A stretch of 63,182 nucleotides of DNA, counting the filler, from Neoconidiobolus thromboides FSU 785 (taxonomy: Eukaryota > Fungi > Entomophthoromycota): NCBI GenBank assembly GCA_025603075.1. It is 7 parts of 7 records of this genome, joined end to end, with 100 filler letters (N's around TTAATTAATTAA, not from the genome) between each part and the next. Parts side by side here need not be neighbours in the genome. Positions count along the whole stretch, not along the records: positions 47,211 to 57,209 come from MU626650.1; 6 more parts are not named here. One strand, given 5' to 3'. How positions within the stretch are numbered: the stretch's first letter is position 1; each line of letters starts with the position of its first letter. The notes under the pieces were generated by a model. The model saw nothing but the letters and a program-made list of their open reading frames with translations. It had not been told where the DNA came from and made no database searches. Of this stretch, positions 47,211 through 57,209 are shown piece after piece. A program made the position numbers and the translations under genes.

Positions 47211-47824
47211 ATGGATATCCTTATTTTCTTGTCTTCTTTCTTAACTCGCTTTGGAATTATTAGATTCAATACTCCATCAGTTAGATCTGCTTGAATCTCT
47301 TCAGCTAAAATATCATGTTTGACTTTGAAGCTTCTCTTAAAACTCTTCTTTGACCTTCTTTCTGTAAGTAAATGCTTTCCATCATCAGTAACACTTGATG
47401 TGCTTATAGAAGCATTATCATCTTCATTAGTTTCATCCGCTTCTTCTACTATAACAATATGCTCATGTTTCTTTGGTCTATAGACATACTCTCCTTTTAA
47501 AGTAAGTGTATTATCGACGTTATCAAATGAAATATTAATGTCTTCTTTTTTAAATCCGGGTAATTCAGCTTCAATAGTATAATAATTTGGAAACTCTGTT
47601 ATGTCAACATATGGCCATTTCTCTTCTTTAGGCTTAGTAGTATTGATTGTGACGTTGTTGTTAGTATTTATAGTTTGTTTCTGTGGATTGTTCTCTTGTG
47701 GAGTAGTTGGTGTTGTATTTTTCTCATGATGATTGAAAGGAGTATAATGCTCAGGAGTAAATACAAAAGGATGGAATTCTTTAGGATAATATACAAATGG
47801 GTTGTTATTTAAAGCAGCGAACAT
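47211..47824 (-). CDS. HSP20 copy 2; last 7 nt of the CDS fall in the gap
   Basis: 47211-48077 matches 22527-23393 (offset 24684) with no differences found by eye. Confidence 0.75.
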
Positions 47825-48517
47825 TGTTTGATGTTGAGTTTGGTATTTAATTTAATATTTAGTTTGATATTTAATTTAATATTTAATTTAATTTTTTATA
47901 ATTTTTGTAATAATTTATCACTTGCTTTTATACTTTTTTTAAAATTATTTTTAAATTGATGGATTTTACTAAACTTTACCAAATTTTTAAGCAATTATCT
48001 AGAAATTTCGATAATAATTGTAACGTTGAGTCCAAATTAGGAAATTTATTCAGGATAATTTGTAATATTAATTATATATTATAAATCTTGACAAAATTAG
48101 TAATATTGCAACTGTAAACTATTTACTAATAACAAAAATAAATATCCTAGTATTTTAATTACTAATGCATTTTTATAATTTTCAACTTTAATAAACAATT
48201 TTTATTAAATAAATTATCTTTGAAAAGTGTAAATTTATCAAATACATTCAATTAGTTATATACTAGATTTGAAAAAATAATAATTAAACAACATAGAAGA
48301 TGATGATGATTATTATATTATTTTTAACTTGTATATATACACTTAATAAAATAACTAAAGTTTCTAAAAAGCAAAAAAGTAATTTATCAACATTAGTAGT
48401 AGACCAAACCTAAGGAGCTATTAAAATATTTGCATTGGATTTTTGCAAAAATCCAATTACTTCCTAAATTAAATCTTTAAAAAAACAATGAAATATCATT
48501 TTCTACCTTGAATAAAA

Positions 48518-50086
48518 ATGGATAACGACGAAATGAATGAAGTAATTGACCATAAAAATATTGATAAAATGTTGTTAAACTATATTAGGACTTAATGAAA
48601 ATAGTTGAAGAATATGCTGAAGAATATTATACTGAACTGGATCAACTAGATATGACCAATAAGTTGGAGCTAAGATCCTTGGTGGCATTGAGTAATTGAA
48701 TTAATTTGAAAATATCAATAAAAGATATTTATATTGAAATTTCTAGGTTGTCTTATGGAAACTTATATTGAAGAAGAAGTTGAAAAAGAATTAAATCCAA
48801 GTAAAAAAAGAAAGATTGAGTTTGCGAACAGTAAAACTCCAATGTATATCAGTAGCTCAGATGAAGAGGAAGTTGCTGAAGAATTAGGTCGTTTGTTACA
48901 AGTTAATAATTCTGGAATATCAACATCAGAAGAAAAAAATCAGGCATTTAATTATTCAATTAACAACTCTGGTTTATTGGCGAAAAAGTCGAGTAACCAA
49001 ATGATGGATGATTTAAATGACGCTTCTGAGATAAGAGTATCTAGTGAGCAAAGAGAAACTGCTAATCAAAATGAGTCAACTAACCAAAACGATAACAATG
49101 ACAAAGATTTCGTTCTAATAGAATCTAATGATGATGGAGTAATGGGTTTCAAATTTAATAATACGGAAATAAAAGATGAGGAGGAAACAACATTGATTAA
49201 AAATGAAGCAGAGTTTAATTTTATTAATGATAGTTTGATTACTATTGATTATAGCAGCGAAGATAGTGAAGAAAACGAGGAAGAGAGAGGAGGCAGTGAG
49301 GAGGATAGCGAAAGTGAGGAAGAAAGTGAGAAAGATATTAGTAGTGATATAACTCAAATTGAAAATGAATCAATACATTCATTGAGCAGTAATTATAAAG
49401 ATGTAATCATAATTGAATCAAGTGAGGATGATATAGCATCTATGACTGAGGATGATCAGGTGAAAAGAGAAGCAAATAGTGATGATGAGTCAAATAAAAA
49501 TAACAATTTAGTATTTAATGACTTAATTAAACAAGAGAATTTCATCCATGAAAATAGAACAGTTAAACAAGAAAGGTTAAACGATGAAGATATAGCAAAC
49601 CAAAGTAAATCCAATGAAATACTAATTAAAGTAGAGGATATTAAAAATAAAAATGGAATTGTAAAACAAGAGGTAGTCGAAGAAACTTTGGTTGAAATGG
49701 AACAAGTTCCAATTAAACAAGAAGGAAGAGAGATACAACTACAAAATGGTAATGATAAAGAAAGTGAAAATGAAAATGAAAGTGAAAGTGAAAGTGAAAG
49801 TGAAAATGTAAATGTAAAGCAAGAATCAGTTGAGGAAAGTTTTATTGAAACTGAACAAGCCATAACTAAGCAAGAAATGGAAACTCAATTACAAATCGAT
49901 TATAATAATATAAAGAGTGAAAATAAATTTGGTATTAAAACCGAAAATATAAAACAAGGATCAAGAAGAAACAAAAGAGATTTAATAAAGGAAAAAGATA
50001 CCAAAATGGAATCACAAGATAAACATAGTAGTGATAGTAAAAGCTCTTATGAATTATTTAAAAGTGAAGATGAACTAGAGATATAA
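48518..50086 (+). CDS. Acidic low-complexity protein with an Rrn10-like N-terminal motif; exons 48518-48541, 48589-48691, 48747-50086
   Basis: Two GT-AG introns give MDNDEMNE|DLMKIVEEYAEEYY...LELRSLVAL|SCLMETYIEEE, followed by about 430 aa rich in E/S/N/D, a KKRK basic motif and repeated IKQE/VKQE. Confidence 0.7.
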
Positions 50087-50096
50087 ATAATTATTT

Positions 50097-50191
50097 GAGG
50101 ATATATTTTTTTGTTTAAAAATTTTACTAACAATCTTTCCGCTCAAATAGCGCTTAAAAAATGGAAAGTGAAACCAAAAAAAAATATCTTT
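50097..50191 (+). mobile_element. GGGGATG MITE between convergent stop codons
   Basis: ATTT/ATTT flanks. Confidence 0.75.
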
Positions 50192-50210
50192 ATTTATTTA
50201 AAATAAAGAC

Positions 50211-51545
50211 TTAAATAAGGGTCACTCTTGTACGTACCAAACCATTAGTAAAATTTCTTAATGGCAACCTTCGATTAGCTTGTAAAATTCTAAAAGCTTC
50301 GTGAATATCCGCTTTTTCTAAAGGTTTATGGCTACCTTTTGGAGGATCAAAAATGGAAGGTATATTGTCATCATTAGGTTTATCTTCAATTTTTTCCACT
50401 TTTTCATCTTGTTCATAAAATTCAAATAAACTCTTAATATCCTCATTTTCCCTTTTAACCTTTTTATAATGTGTGGAGTTTAAGGAATTTTTCAAACTTT
50501 TTTTTAAATTCATTCGACTTTGTTGCTGTTGTTTTAATTTAATATCAATAGCTAATTCCGTTAATCCGCCCACCATTTCAAATGTTAAAAAACCAAGAAT
50601 ATCAATTAAATCATCATTAGCTTTAGTATCCATGTAACTCGCCATATGACACCATTCTTTAAATTTTTTACTTTTTCGATAGGTAAATGAAGCTTGTCGA
50701 CATTCTGAGTAAAATACATATTCTTCTCGACTCATCAATTGAGTAATGGCATCTGCATTCTATAAGTAAATTTATATTTAAGAATAAACCAAACTAAACT
50801 AAAACTATTTCATTTACCTTTAATCTTTGTAAACTATCATTAAAAGCGTCTCTGCTCTCCTCATCCCCTTCACTATCACTATCTAATATACTAGTCAAAG
50901 AGTTCAATAATTCCCAAGGTAATTTAACTGACATTTTTTTTAATGCTGGTTTATCTAAACGTTTTAAAACTATTAATTTCCTTTCAACAAAAAGAACCAT
51001 TAAAAAACTCACCAGCTCCATCTTCAATTAAGTCTTCTACCGCTTCATTACCCCCAGATTCTTTTGTATTTTTTCGAACATCTTTCCATGCTAAAAAAGT
51101 ACGTAACCGATTCACTTTAGCTCGATCGCGTCGTATTAAAAATATTAAATCTTCTGGTGAAACACTACGAGTATTTCGATTATTCGCTAATTTACTCGCC
51201 GAAACTACCTAATAAATGAATCAGTATAATTGATTTTTATCCCATTTCGACTCAAATTTATAAACCAAATACTAATAGTTATTACAAAATATAAATAGGA
51301 CTAATAATAAATAGAAATATTTATAAAAATTACCATTTCAATTACTTGAGTACGTACAATATCTTCAATTAACATAGCTGTTTCTGTTAATGCATCATTT
51401 TTTTCACCAAATACAAACATCATCTGCTGGATTTCACTAAGGTATTTATATTTGCTCTAAATATTTGAAACTAAAGTTAGTCCATTTGAAACATAGAAAG
51501 GTAGATTGAAATTACTTGCTTTTCGTCATTATCTACTAAATCCAT
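50211..51545 (-). CDS. SPT3: SAGA subunit Spt3, multi-exon
   Basis: KYLSEIQQMMFVFGE...LIEDIVRTQVIEM, EDLIFLIRRDRAKVNRLRTFLAWKDVRK, MSREEYVFYSECRQASFTYRKSKKFKEW, DILGFLTFEMV. Confidence 0.93.
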
Positions 51546-51665
51546 GGTGATATCTTCTCTAAGGAAATAAAGTTAAATATTAATAAAGGAAATCAACGTA
51601 ATAAAGTTTCAAGTTTGAAAAATCAAGAACAGATTTAAAAATTTAATAAAATCGTATGGTAATGC

Positions 51666-51737
51666 GGATCCATGGTGTAATGGTTAGCACCCAAGGTTTT
51701 GATCCTTGTAATCCGAGTTCGATTCTCGGTGGGTCCT
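51666..51737 (+). tRNA. tRNA-Gln (TTG), acceptor-stem variant
   Basis: GGATCCATGGTG...TTTTGAT...TGGGTCCT, followed by a T run. Confidence 0.96.
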
Positions 51738-51866
51738 TTTAAGTACGATTGAAATTTTTTTTAGCTTATTATAATATTAAATAATTCTATAAAGACAATA
51801 AGTAAGATATAGAAAAATGATATCAAAATACAAAAAAATAACAATTCTATTTATTTATTCATTTTT

Positions 51867-53328
51867 TTAAGGTACAAATGGACTTTCTTTAATCTTAGCC
51901 ATAGGTTCATAAAACTCTCTACCTAATCCAGCTTGATCTCTAGCAGGATAATTAAAAGGGGGTTTTAAAGTACCAAAGAAATGTTTTGATACAAAAGCAT
52001 GAAAATACTTGGCATTAGGATCTATCTTATTTTCTTTAACTAACATATCTTCAGGTAATTCTAAATCTATAGTTTCAGTTGAAGTTTCTTTAAATTCTGT
52101 TTTGTCTTCTGTGTTTTCACTCTTTTCCTCTCCTTCTTTTACACTCAATGCTCCTATCTTTTCTTCCAATTCCATTTCTTTTTTCAATAATTCATCCATC
52201 CTATCTCTGTTTTTATCACAGTAATATTTAAACCATCGAGTCCCAATTTCCACATGAGTTATTTCATCTTCGTAAATTTTTTCTAACATAGTACTTGATT
52301 CAATATCCCCATGTTTTTTGAAATTATTAATTGTACTTGGGTTCACGTCAAGACCTCGTGCTTCATGAACCATATGTACAATGGCCATACGAGCAGGCAT
52401 GAGATGCTTAGTTTCTGCTGCCGATTCCCAGATGCCTAGAAAAGGGAAGATGAGATTAGTAACAAGTTAAGGAAGGGAAAATAACTATTTGATTTTAAAA
52501 ACTAATTGTTAAATATTAACTTACCAGCGTGGATAGGTATATCACCAAATTTAGCATCCAAAGCATCAAGTCGTTGAATCAACCAATTAAAATGCTATTA
52601 TAAAAACTGATTAATAATCTTCTATCAATTACTAGTTTTTTTTAATTTAAATCACATCCTTTTAATTAGAATAAAATTTTAAATTGAAATCAAAACTTCA
52701 TTTACCTTAGCTTCATCTAAGGCCATTTTTACAAAATCATCATAGTATCCTTTTGGAAATGGTGGATTATTGGAGTTCTCTTCGATTTTACCAAAACGTG
52801 CTATATTATCCCAAGCTGTATCAATAGCCCACTGTTCCACATTAGCTAATGCATGTAAAATAGTGATTCTAGAAGCCTATTGAAAAGGAGAAAGGGATTA
52901 ATATTAATATTAGTTTTAAATTTTGTATTCTTTTAATTATCATTTTAAAAAAGATCAAAATATTTAATATTAATACTTACTAAACTACCTGCTTTTCCTC
53001 GACGAGGTGCTCGTCCTGGTTGTACGATATCAAAATTACTTGGGCGGGGCGGTATATCAGGGATACTCTCTTCTCTTCCTATAGGTAAATTCTCTTTATT
53101 TCGCCACCATTCTCCTGCCTCATTTGTTAATTTTACTTTTTCTATTGGATCTTCAGTATATAGTATTTTAGCTGCCCATTGGCATAAAGTAGTTGGAGTA
53201 ACTATTGTTGGGGGTGTTGTCATTCGATTGAATTTAGGTGGTAAATAAGTTAACGGATTATAGTTTTGTTTAGTTTTAATAGATTGATAAAATTTAGTCA
53301 ATGTAGTGAAGTGGGATTTAAATATCAT
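51867..53328 (-). CDS. DUF455 ferritin-like di-iron protein, 4 exons
   Basis: ILHALANVEQWAIDTAWDIIARF, DEAKHF, VHEARGLD and DEITHVEIGTRWF motifs; start is 53328 or an internal ATG near 53223. Confidence 0.88.
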
Positions 53329-53457
53329 AAAGATAAAAAGTAGAAATTTAGATTGAAATTTTTATTAAATGGAACTTAAATTTGAAATAAGAATAAATTA
53401 AAATGAACAAAATTAATAAAAATACAATTCAACTTTAATAAATAAATATACATTTGA

Positions 53458-56400
53458 TTAAAAGGATAAATCTACCATAGTTTTTGTAGTTGGATGCATT
53501 TGTAACCCATAAACTGTTTTTGTAAATTTCAATTTTCCCCATGATTTATAAATATATAATCGAAGACTAGCATACATAATTAAAAATACTCCTCCTACTA
53601 AAGGTATCCAAATAAAATCGAAATTCAATTTATAAGAGGATCCAAATACTATATTTAAAAATGGAACATAAACACAAATGAATCCAATTATTAATCCGAA
53701 TCCAATACCTGCAAAATTCTTCCAGTTTGAAAACATTTGACGACCAAATGGGTATTGTAAATATGCTTTTACAGCAAATAGATTGAAAGCTTGCATAATC
53801 ATAACAGATAATAAAAAAGCAGATTGACCTTGAGCATTAATATCTAATAAATCACTTGTTGTATACTCTTTTCCAACACTTGAAATAAATATTTGTTGAC
53901 TATCATCAAAATTACCTTGCTTTGATGCTAAATAAATATCACTTAAATAAATCTCTTTTCTATAGAATGTCCAAAAAAAGGCAATAAATCCAACAATCGT
54001 TTCAATAATACCTGCTTCAAACCAAGACCAAAAAACAAGGTCTTTATCAATTAAAAACTCTCCTTCATTCTTTTCAAATAAATATTCTTTTAATCCTCCA
54101 TTAAACAACCACTCTAGTTTGTCTTTTATCTTTTGTAGAAGATTAGGTTTTATAATTTGATTTGATTCTAAATCTACTTTCATTTGGAGCTTTCTTTTTT
54201 GTCGCTTTCTAAATTGTTCAATTGTAGTTTTATTCACTGGATTTCTAGGTTGTAATCTCATTAACCCTGCATCTGAATCAATCTTATCCCAAGCAAAAGA
54301 TAATGAAGTACATAAATCAAATCCTAAATCAATGACCAATGTTAATGCAGTTGACATAGCAGCAGGTACTGAAAACAAAGCAGGGGCAATTTGTGGTAAT
54401 ACTTCTGGAAATGTATGTGTACAAGTTAATTTAATACATTTCTTTATATTAATGAATGTTCTTCTACCTTCTTCGATACCCTTAACAATAGTTGAAAAAT
54501 TATTGCTTAACAAAATAATACTAGCAATTTCCCCTACTACTTCAGAACCTGAATAAGCCATTGCTATTGATAAATCAGCTTTTTTCAAGGCTGGTGCATC
54601 ATTAACACCATCCCCTACCATACCAACAATATGTCCGATAGATTGTGCTCTCTTTATGATCTCTAATTTATGTGTAGGTAAAGTACTTGCAAAGATAATT
54701 TCTTCATTATCAAATATGTCATCCCATTCATCATCTGTTAAGTTGCTAATTTGATTACCGTTAATAACTACTGAAGTATATTCGTGAGATTCAATTAATT
54801 CAATGTTTCTTCCTGTTCTTTTAGCTATTTTTTCTTTTGTCTCCATTACCATCATATTTGTTTTTCTTGCTATTGCTTCAGCACATAAAGGATTATCATC
54901 CGACACCATTATCATTTTAATACCTGCAGTACGACAACGTCCAATAGCTTCACGAATTCCATGCTTGGGTGGATCTTCTAATGCTAATAAACCGTTAAAA
55001 CAATAACCAGATAATGGATAATTTTTAGTTCTTAAATCAAATTTATAATTTATATTATATATCTCATTGGATAATTTCAGTTGTGCAAAAGCAAACACTT
55101 TATAACCTTTACTTGATAAATTGGTATTAGATTCAATCACTTTTGTTCGGTTTTCTTCAGTTAGCCCGATTTCTCTATCTTCATAATTCATACTTGTGCA
55201 TAAATTTAGTATACCTTCCACTTCTCCTTTAACAAATAATATAAAATGGCCATCTTCATGTTCTATTTTATGTATGTTTAGATTATATCTTTTTCTTATA
55301 TTGTACCCTGTTTCTAATACTCTAGGATATTCACTTAATAAACTATCGAACGAAGTATCGTACTTATAACAAAAATTCAATAACCCACACTCTGCTGGAC
55401 CCCCAATTGTATTCCTATGATCGATTTCTAGATCATTGCGATCAAATGTAGCAGTTGTAGTTAACCCAACATTTCTCAATAATCCTTTCATTCCATCCAT
55501 TTCTGGATTAAAAGATAAACAATGACCTATCCTCCCCTTTTGAGCGACACTGAAAAGCTCTAAATTATTATAGACAATTGAAACAGACATTTCATTCCTA
55601 GTTAATATACCAACTTTATCTGTAATTAACATAGTTACACTACCTAACGTTTCAACGCCCTGAAAATCCTTAACTAAGATCTGATTATCAGCTAGAGATT
55701 TCACTGCTATGGATAACATTAAATTGATGGATGCAGGTAAACCTTCAGGCACCCAAGCCAATAACAAACCAGCTGAGAATAAAAAAGCTTTAACTACATT
55801 ATTTGTACTAACAAAAACCAAAGAAAAAAATATAGCTACAGTAATTAAATCAATAGCATAAATAGCTAGTACAAAAGATTTGATTTCTTTGGTTAATCTA
55901 GCGGATTTTTTCTTTTCTTTATTAGTCAATTGCAAAATTCTACCCAGCATAGTCTGGTTACCTGTCCTAATAACAACACCATATCCATCACCACTGACGA
56001 CATGGGTACCTTTAAAAACAATGTTTGTGGCATCAAACACATAGCTAATTTTATTACTACTCTTTTTTTCTAAAAACTTAGTTTCTCCAGTCAAAGAAGA
56101 GTTATTAACAATTAAATGATCAGTATGAAATAATCGAATATCTGCTGGTATTGTTTCATTTTGTTTTAATAACACAACATCCCCTGGAACTAAATCTTTT
56201 ACTGATACCTTTAATATATCTGAATCTCTTAACAAGTAGCAATACTCGGGTATAATATTTCTACAAGATTCTAGTATATTCTCACTCTTTTGCTCCTGTA
56301 TGTAGTCTAGGGTAGCATTAAACAGCGAAGCTCCAAGTAACACAGAGCCTAAATAAATATCGGGTATAATTGAACCATAATCTTTTAAAATTAACAAAAA

Positions 56401-56688
56401 GCAGATGATACCAAACAATACTAATGGGAAATTAAATACGGAGAATAAATATTTAAGAAACTGTATGATGCGTGAGGATTTTTTTGTGAATGTTAATATA
56501 TTTTCTCCATAAATTTGTCGTCGTTGTTTTTGTTCTTCTAATGAAAGACCTTGACTGAGGTAAGGTTGGGCTATATTGATCCTTGTTTTTAATCGTTTAA
56601 TGACATCAATAATAGGTAACCTATGTTCAACAATCTTGTTGTTGCCATCATCTTGTTTCCTTTGTTCTGACGATTGTCTTATTGCCAT
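53458..56688 (-). CDS. Type IIC (Na+/K+-ATPase-like) P-type ATPase with altered catalytic motifs
   Basis: NSSLTGET, VPEGLP, DKVGILT, DPPK, GDGVNDAPALKKAD, GRRTFINIKK, IDLGFD; 1076-aa intronless ORF with 10-TM architecture. Confidence 0.92.
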   Translation of the reverse strand: MAIRQSSEQRKQDDGNNKIVEHRLPIIDVIKRLKTRINIAQPYLSQGLSLEEQKQRRQIYGENILTFTKKSSRIIQFLKYLFSVFNFPLVLFGIICFLLILKDYGSIIPDIYLGSVLLGASLFNATLDYIQEQKSENILESCRNIIPEYCYLLRDSDILKVSVKDLVPGDVVLLKQNETIPADIRLFHTDHLIVNNSSLTGETKFLEKKSSNKISYVFDATNIVFKGTHVVSGDGYGVVIRTGNQTMLGRILQLTNKEKKKSARLTKEIKSFVLAIYAIDLITVAIFFSLVFVSTNNVVKAFLFSAGLLLAWVPEGLPASINLMLSIAVKSLADNQILVKDFQGVETLGSVTMLITDKVGILTRNEMSVSIVYNNLELFSVAQKGRIGHCLSFNPEMDGMKGLLRNVGLTTTATFDRNDLEIDHRNTIGGPAECGLLNFCYKYDTSFDSLLSEYPRVLETGYNIRKRYNLNIHKIEHEDGHFILFVKGEVEGILNLCTSMNYEDREIGLTEENRTKVIESNTNLSSKGYKVFAFAQLKLSNEIYNINYKFDLRTKNYPLSGYCFNGLLALEDPPKHGIREAIGRCRTAGIKMIMVSDDNPLCAEAIARKTNMMVMETKEKIAKRTGRNIELIESHEYTSVVINGNQISNLTDDEWDDIFDNEEIIFASTLPTHKLEIIKRAQSIGHIVGMVGDGVNDAPALKKADLSIAMAYSGSEVVGEIASIILLSNNFSTIVKGIEEGRRTFINIKKCIKLTCTHTFPEVLPQIAPALFSVPAAMSTALTLVIDLGFDLCTSLSFAWDKIDSDAGLMRLQPRNPVNKTTIEQFRKRQKRKLQMKVDLESNQIIKPNLLQKIKDKLEWLFNGGLKEYLFEKNEGEFLIDKDLVFWSWFEAGIIETIVGFIAFFWTFYRKEIYLSDIYLASKQGNFDDSQQIFISSVGKEYTTSDLLDINAQGQSAFLLSVMIMQAFNLFAVKAYLQYPFGRQMFSNWKNFAGIGFGLIIGFICVYVPFLNIVFGSSYKLNFDFIWIPLVGGVFLIMYASLRLYIYKSWGKLKFTKTVYGLQMHPTTKTMVDLSF

Positions 56689-57012
56689 TTTTAATGTTAA
56701 AATCGGTTAGTATTAAGTGTATAGATAAAAACAATCAAAGAAATAGAAAAACTTTGACAGAAATGGCGGGATATTTTTACTCATGGGGATTAATTGAAAA
56801 AAGTGGAGGTTAAATATGGATAAATTGATGGATTTCTATTAAGAGACAAGGAATGACTTAATAATATTTTTTGATTGGTTTAAATTTGATTGTTCTTGAA
56901 ATCAAAGTTAAGCCTAAGATTATTAACCAAATTTGGCAGTACTCATGCTATCCTTTGTTCATCTTACTTTCTTTTATTTGATTGAGCACCTAATTATAAA
57001 ATAGTACTATAT

Positions 57013-57209
57013 AGGGATGTTTTTTTTGGCTTTATCACTTTTTCCATCTTTTAAGCATTATTTGAGTGGAAAATTTGTTAGTAAAATTCTTAAACACAAA
57101 AATACGTCCCCATATGGGGATGTATTTTTGTGTTTAAGAATTTTACTAACAAATTTTCCGCTTACATAGCGCTTAAAAAATGGAAAAAATAATGAAGTCA
57201 AAAAAAACA
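57013..57209. mobile_element. Head-to-head MITE pair (57013-57111 minus, 57116-57209 plus)
   Basis: The copies share a single ATAT; the second runs into a gap. Confidence 0.85.

Follow-up and report, generated by a model that had tools for sequence, protein, structure and literature searches.

We analyzed a stretch of 63,182 nucleotides from the insect-pathogenic, entomophthoralean fungus Neoconidiobolus thromboides FSU 785 (the window; seven parts of assembly GCA_025603075.1, joined end to end). The part at positions 47211-57209 corresponds to scaffold MU626650.1 (9999 bases, GC content about 28%) and encodes on its minus strand a P-type ATPase, here called P0001, in which several otherwise invariant residues of the ATP and phosphate site are replaced while the nucleophile and the Mg ligands are kept. 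A sequence-only reading of this locus had described an uninterrupted frame of 1076 amino acids for a type IIC ATPase with degenerate catalytic motifs, and had proposed a catalytically impaired but retained pump homolog or a pump of unusual chemistry. Re-derivation of the open reading frame (ORF) revealed no stop codon inside 53458-56688 on the minus strand.

The assignment to type IIC (P2C) proved to be right, since both the matches in the PDB and the AlphaFold model point to Na,K- and H,K-ATPases. The Pfam domains Cation_ATPase_N, E1-E2_ATPase, Cation_ATPase, Hydrolase and Cation_ATPase_C are all found above cut-off, and together with the model they give the complete architecture of the superfamily, with actuator (A), phosphorylation (P) and nucleotide-binding (N) domains and a membrane domain of ten helices. 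In the PDB, alpha chains of Na,K- and H,K-ATPases rank first (E about 1e-135), followed at a wide distance by SPCA (E about 1e-75) and SERCA (E about 1e-64). The model has a P2C fold with a mean predicted local distance difference test score (pLDDT) of 79.6 and a predicted template modelling score (pTM) of 0.70; a Foldseek comparison with Na,K- and H,K-ATPase structures yields E about 1e-65, and the best fits are to entries in the E1 state (TM-score 0.70-0.76 by model length and 0.76-0.83 by chain length). Length, domain order, an insert of about 55 residues between the membrane helices M6 and M7, the M5 and M6 motifs and the C-terminal GLxMHPT are traits of fungal type IIC ATPases. No beta-like gene was found within the 10-kb piece around P0001.

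P0001 was aligned with 109 full-length relatives from fungi and animals using MAFFT. The following features are read from this alignment if no other source is given; all are on the minus strand.

53458-56688, minus strand: divergent fungal type IIC P-type ATPase paralog P0001, 1076 amino acids (uninterrupted ORF of 3231 bases; Pfam and PDB matches)
56689-57100, minus strand: 5' leader, on the same RNA contig as the ORF (X2 record 9); the contig stops inside a dispersed palindromic repeat
56080-56091, minus strand: A-domain TGET, dephosphorylation Glu202 kept, Ser replaced by Thr
55738-55749, minus strand: M4 cation-site motif PEGL, kept
55600-55620, minus strand: phosphorylation loop DKVGILT, residues 357-363 (T359V, T361I; Asp, Lys, Gly, Leu and the last Thr kept)
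55390-55404, minus strand: GGPAE in place of GDA(T/S)E (D430G, A431P; Glu433 kept)
55288-55308, minus strand: adenine pocket of the N domain, GYNIRKR in place of PFNSxNK (P461G, F462Y, S464I, K467R)
55216-55230, minus strand: KGEVE in place of KGAPE (A489E, P490V; Lys487, Gly and Glu kept)
54964-54975, minus strand: DPPK, kept (motif reading)
54892-54909, minus strand: MVSDDN in place of MVTGDH (T596S, G597D, H599N; Asp598 kept)
54667-54690, minus strand: ASTLPTHK in place of ARTSPxxK (R668S; Lys674 of motif III of the haloacid dehalogenase (HAD) superfamily kept); ASTLP itself at 54676-54690
54598-54615, minus strand: GDGVND, HAD motif IV, Mg2+ and phosphate ligands, kept
54316-54420, minus strand: M5 (THTFPE) and M6 (IDLGFD) cation-site segments, near the fungal type IIC consensus

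All motif readings made earlier from the sequence (DKVGILT, MVSDDN, KGEVE, GGPAE, ASTLP and TGET as changed, PEGL, DPPK and GDGVND as kept) were thus reproduced with their coordinates. P-type ATPases are recognized by the PROSITE pattern PS00154, D-K-T-G-T-[LIVM]-[TIS], and P0001 fails it with a Val at D+2 and an Ile at D+4. HAD motif II, TGD(N/H), is also broken: it reads SDDN, with Asp in place of Gly, and only the hydroxyl residue and the Asp remain. Further conserved sites are changed in GERV (GYKV), DVSK (Lys to Gly) and LLDDNF (LLSNNF). On the other side, HAD motif IV (GDGVNDAPALKKAD) and, within THK, the Lys of motif III are retained, and TGET is a mild variant with its Glu in place, as relatives also show TGEA, TGEN and TGEV. 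The cation-site motifs PEGL, THTFPE, IDLGFD and MQAFNLFAVK (M4, M5, M6 and M8) match the fungal consensus. The phosphoryl-transfer side chains kept are Asp357, Lys358, Thr363, Ser596, Asp598, Lys674, Asp693, Asn696, Asp697 and Glu202.

The Thr at D+2 of DKTGT hydrogen-bonds the phosphoryl group. Together with the Gly of TGD, KGAPE, the hinge Arg, the Asp of GDATE and the surroundings of the adenine-stacking Phe, it presumably lines the MgATP and phosphate site, as we gather from structures and mutagenesis of SERCA and Na,K-ATPase. We take the Arg lost in ASTLP to be this hinge Arg (R678 in SERCA) and not the Arg that contacts the beta-phosphate; the latter presumably lies in GERV and is conservatively changed to Lys530 in P0001.

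The near-invariance that had been claimed for the Thr of DKTGT and for the Thr and Gly of TGD was borne out, since all 109 relatives keep both motifs. DKTGTLT and KGAPE are present in 109 of 109, MVTGDH in 108 with MVTGDF in the remaining one, and P0001 is the sole exception to DKTGTLT, KGAPE and TGD. The Arg of ARTSP is likewise found in 109 of 109 relatives and is Ser in P0001 only, and GD(A/G)(T/S)E, which is GGPAE in P0001, is kept in 107 of 109. Among 267 relatives fetched, no other full-length protein without DKTGT or TGD was found. At the 167 columns with at least 95% conservation P0001 departs from the consensus 38 times; the next worst relative does so 12 times, and the median is 0. 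Measured against this alignment, the motif changes in P0001 exceed chance.

Since such changes could stem from errors, we compared the sequence with independent sequencing runs. The stretch is present in nine runs from four organism codes and six studies (word share at least 0.70). DKVGILT is confirmed by X7 record 20 and X9 record 28 (55440-55699), MVSDDN by X9 record 25 and KGEVE by X9 record 26, each with no other letter. X7 record 19 (54512-55377, contig depth 45) contains only two other letters, which we read as the synonymous sites 55237 and 55261, the only sites listed there at full depth; if this is correct, record 19 also confirms MVSDDN, ASTLP and KGEVE. Contigs identical over the motifs come from three runs besides the likely source of the assembly. 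The short scaffold of 9999 bases with a dispersed repeat at its end might raise the suspicion that the contig is chimeric or full of errors; given that the same sequence is found in nine runs of six studies, with motif-identical contigs in three of them, the probability of such an artefact of assembly or sequencing is negligible.

The gene is transcribed. In X2, a run from another study, one collinear RNA contig of 3657 nt (record 9) extends over 53458-57100 with seven other letters and no gaps, covering the whole ORF and about 410 bases of leader. A gap-free contig over the ORF shows that the P0001 gene is transcribed and unspliced, and the bases are confirmed by an independent study. X2, X7 and X10 contain RNA, because an intron of the neighbouring DUF455 gene is spliced out in them and this joint is missing from the DNA run X9:

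52876-52979, minus strand: DUF455 gene intron, 104 bases, GT..AG (CT..AC on the plus strand); spliced out in X2, X7 and X10, not in the DNA run X9

A further sign of RNA is that X2 contigs stop at gene borders. Only about 130 bases separate the ATPase stop codon from the start codon of the DUF455 gene (ATG at 53328, minus strand), which follows downstream.

The runs also show sequence variation at this locus. Over 52600-57000, two versions that differ by about 5-8% occur together in X7 and X9 (organisms C and D), and one version each is present in X2 (organism A) and X10 (organism E), which suggests heterozygous, hybrid or mixed isolates in a species complex. Over 53495-55668 the version in X10 differs at 124 letters, or about 6%, and has no gaps. 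In the TTG repeat encoding the N-terminal tail (56635-56646) the length varies in frame, with an additional TTG in X9 and three bases less in X10.

These haplotypes allow a test for selection, which rests on the 33 ORF sites within the best-supported 40 of about 390 differences (whole stretch, four runs). At these sites, 23 of 33 differences are synonymous and 10 are replacements, mostly of the Val/Ile type. Random placement of the same mutation types predicts 7.9 ± 2.3 synonymous changes, and none of 2000 simulations reached 23. The headpiece codons 336-745 show the same pattern, with nine synonymous and two nonsynonymous differences among those listed (P about 1e-4). P0001 is therefore a functional gene kept by purifying selection and not a pseudogene. 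The situation named earlier as speaking against retention, a ratio of nonsynonymous to synonymous changes near 1 without expression, is not what we observe, as there is a synonymous excess and a full-length transcript.

A young or decaying pseudogene that by chance is still open was nevertheless considered, since the extreme divergence, the AT-biased composition, the loss of invariant motifs and the presence of a canonical paralog in the genome would all be expected for one. Single-base insertions at 55823 and 56478 in RNA contigs of X10 point in the same direction; if real, the organism-E ortholog would be frameshifted. These insertions, however, lie in A7 and T7 runs at a depth of 5-7 and occur in this run only. 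They have no reported counterpart in X7 or X9, where other parts of the gene show the divergent haplotype, and probably are errors of assembly. Insertions and deletions near the N-terminus of P0001 are multiples of three. Moreover, in simulated neutral drift of this 3.2-kb ORF (DNA of about 30% GC) the frame was open in none of 300 runs by the time 5% of the amino acids had changed. With the strong synonymous excess between haplotypes and the full-length transcript, a pseudogene is very improbable, and the pseudogene and artefact explanations taken together account for at most a very small share of the probability.

The genome contains a canonical counterpart. The paralog P0002 (K502DRAFT_293275, on MU626373.1 of the same assembly) is encoded in a single exon of about 3.2 kb like P0001, belongs to the same clade and is the protein with the highest identity to P0001, about 42-43%. 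In contrast to P0001, it carries every canonical motif in the alignment and evolves at a normal rate, with 69% identity to the Massospora sequence. The maximum-likelihood tree places P0001 within the clade of fungal type IIC proteins, where its sister group is P0002 plus Massospora (Shimodaira-Hasegawa-like approximate likelihood ratio test 92, to be read with caution for the long branch). A position as sister to P0002 alone, that is, a species-specific duplication, is not rejected by the approximately unbiased (AU) test (p-AU 0.21), to which long-branch effects apply as well. The terminal branch of P0001 amounts to 2.72 changes per column, roughly nine-fold the median of 0.29. Orthologs sharing the substitutions of P0001, which had been proposed as a check, were found in neither of two protein searches: a word-indexed search of 5.8 billion proteins gave no relative closer than 43% identity, and an exhaustive HMMER scan of 1.84 billion representative proteins revealed no ortholog, the best matches having 39-49% identity, with the highest values coming from fragments.

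The acceleration affects the whole protein. Relative to fungal outgroups, P0001 has 293 changes of its own and P0002 has 83, and between 24% and 44% of the columns conserved in the outgroup are broken in P0001 across all domains, the N domain being the worst (0.44) and the transmembrane helices TM7-10 the least affected (0.24). The ratio of FYMINK to GARP amino acids is 1.94, compared to 1.32 in P0002 and a maximum of 1.59 among the other 109 proteins, and this drift towards AT-coded amino acids fits a long phase of weakened constraint on P0001. Radical replacements occur at 14 near-invariant columns, 12 of them in the N or P domain; 18 of the 38 departures have a BLOSUM62 score above 0, for example T596S, F462Y, K467R and R530K. 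By manual count, four of 14 key chemistry residues are replaced, compared to 23-32% of the ordinary conserved columns in P0001. Such similar rates are the pattern expected if catalysis had lost its special protection; by the same token, the kept Asp357 proves nothing in either direction.

The explanation that best accounts for these observations is the following. P0001 is an old duplicate of a fungal type IIC ATPase, of which the canonical copy P0002 remains in N. thromboides. After the duplication it evolved several times faster than P0002 in all domains, drifting towards the AT-biased amino acid composition of its genome. In this course otherwise invariant side chains around the ATP and phosphoryl site were lost: both Thr of DKTGT (D+2 and D+4), the TGD Gly, the Ala-Pro pair of KGAPE, the GDATE Asp, the hinge Arg in ARTSP and a number of residues in the N-domain pocket. 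Today the gene is expressed as one unspliced mRNA under purifying selection that includes the headpiece, and its product is predicted still to adopt the ten-helix fold of a P2C alpha-type subunit, with the cation pocket intact. P0001 would bind MgATP and autophosphorylate poorly or not at all, and may be kept for a role without a fast ATP-driven cycle, such as binding or sensing cations, letting them pass slowly or passively, or scaffolding or regulating P0002. Of the sequence-only reading, the retained half is supported by the unspliced transcript, the purifying selection including the N and P headpiece and the canonical paralog alongside, and the catalytically impaired half is plausible. From the sequence comparisons, we put the probability that P0001 has lost ATP-driven pumping at roughly 0.55; that a free-standing full-length P2C alpha subunit gave up pumping and has been selected for a non-catalytic job appears about an even bet.

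Several observations weigh against such a loss. Near-invariant columns are broken at 27 of 106 positions in the N and P headpiece and at 11 of 61 elsewhere, an excess that is not significant (p=0.34), and radical changes (12 of 106 against 2 of 61) show a trend only (p=0.09). A decay targeted at catalysis was rejected as an explanation, since the headpiece is not significantly enriched in broken invariant columns. The motif changes may simply be one part of the acceleration seen across the gene. That selection preserves the headpiece could be a sign of persisting nucleotide binding; the selection test is limited to the 33 listed sites, and the motif state of the second haplotype lies outside of them. 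The phosphoryl-transfer side chains named above are kept, and in the structures of SERCA and Na,K-ATPase the backbone provides several of the contacts to phosphate and Mg, so a slow or altered cycle would be possible.

The alternative is that P0001 is still a working ATP-driven cation pump with a remodelled active site. Val at D+2, Ser-Asp-Asp in place of TGD and Lys in place of the beta-phosphate Arg would be tolerated or compensated; kinetics, nucleotide affinity or phosphoryl donor may be altered, and the protein may be specialised for a life stage or a cation. In favour of this alternative, all ten phosphoryl-chemistry side chains from Asp357 to Glu202 are kept, nearly half of the departures (18 of 38) are conservative, the M4, M5, M6 and M8 cation-site motifs follow the fungal consensus, purifying selection now acts on the N and P domains, and the predicted fold is complete and E1-like. 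The alternative is harder to reconcile with DKTGT, TGD and KGAPE being unchanged in 109 of 109 relatives from fungi to animals, with 12 of the 14 radical replacements at near-invariant columns falling into the N or P domain, and with chemistry residues being replaced as often as ordinary conserved ones (4 of 14 compared to 23-32%). In addition, the P-domain core at residues 694-728 has pLDDT values below 50 in the P0001 model, while only three residues are that low there in a control model of P0002, built from the same 37 sequences realigned with P0002 first. This gap is modest, as the region is weak in the control too, and it would lend weak support to decay. We regard an active pump as a serious alternative, though a somewhat doubtful one, and prefer the loss of ATP-driven pumping in a retained protein.

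The remainder of the 10-kb piece contains repeats and three other genes besides DUF455. Positions 57018-57209 form a near-perfect palindrome of 192 bases (arms 57018-57113 and 57114-57209, 89% complementary), inside which the ATPase transcript contig ends; a 75-base palindrome arm is found again at 50093-50167 (88% identical). In DNA as well as RNA runs, summed contig depth over the palindrome exceeds that of its flanks by a factor of thousands and many strand-switch joints occur; the element looks like a very abundant dispersed repeat resembling miniature inverted-repeat transposable elements (MITE-like). Beside an HSP20-like gene, at the edge of the piece, there is a tandem array with a 12-base period (47826-47896, four overlapping copies of an AT-rich unit). 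Further neighbours are a TFIID-18kDa gene and this one:

48734-50086, plus strand: gene called at 443 amino acids (450-amino acid ORF in the window), no Pfam family on record (7124-8455 of L001)

In early-diverging fungi, type IIC ATPases are well established as a lineage (Corradi and Sanders, 2006; PMC1479386). P0001 shares their architecture, length, M6-M7 insert and motifs and nests beside entomophthoralean sequences; it differs as the only member without DKTGT, TGD and KGAPE, and with about three times the departures of any other. Judged by sequence, it is a fungal P2C ATPase by descent, fold and architecture, yet at DKTGT and TGD it fails the signature of the family. Deletion of the type IIC genes NK1 and NK2 in the insect pathogen Beauveria bassiana gave little phenotype (PMC7588218), which fits duplicates that are free to drift. 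P4-ATPase-guanylate cyclase chimeras (P4GC) of alveolates and stramenopiles require their ATPase module even though some lineages have changes in its DKTGT and A-domain motifs, and a loss or change of ATPase activity has been raised as possible by the authors (PMC13466520). These proteins are of the P4 flippase type and fused to a cyclase, and some have no Asp, whereas P0001 is a free-standing P2C homolog with the Asp. The Caenorhabditis elegans protein CATP-1, an Na,K-ATPase alpha-like subunit, is of P2C type like P0001, and a pump-independent role has been proposed for it, according to a part of PMC11631496 that discusses Ruaud and Bessereau (2007). In contrast to P0001, its loop reads D-K-S/T-G-T with a hydroxyl residue at D+2, its other motifs are kept, and its pump activity matters in other contexts. 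A text search of a 2023 review on unsolved questions about these ATPases gave no match for "inactive" and none of relevance for "pseudo".

To date P0001 has been seen in a single species complex, and its proposed function is a prediction from sequence, which limits the significance of the finding. Few enzymes are conserved as rigidly as P-type ATPases, and P0001 breaks DKTGT, TGD and KGAPE yet is transcribed and under selection. With P0002 in the same genome as a built-in control for this candidate pseudo-pump, it amounts to an experiment of nature that asks which side chains of the active site are truly needed and what the scaffold of a pump can do when it does not pump. If P0001 is dead as an enzyme, it would be a rare free-standing pseudoenzyme of the superfamily, with the altered P4 modules of the guanylate cyclase chimeras as the main known parallel; if it is active, the Thr at D+2 and the Gly of TGD would be replaceable.

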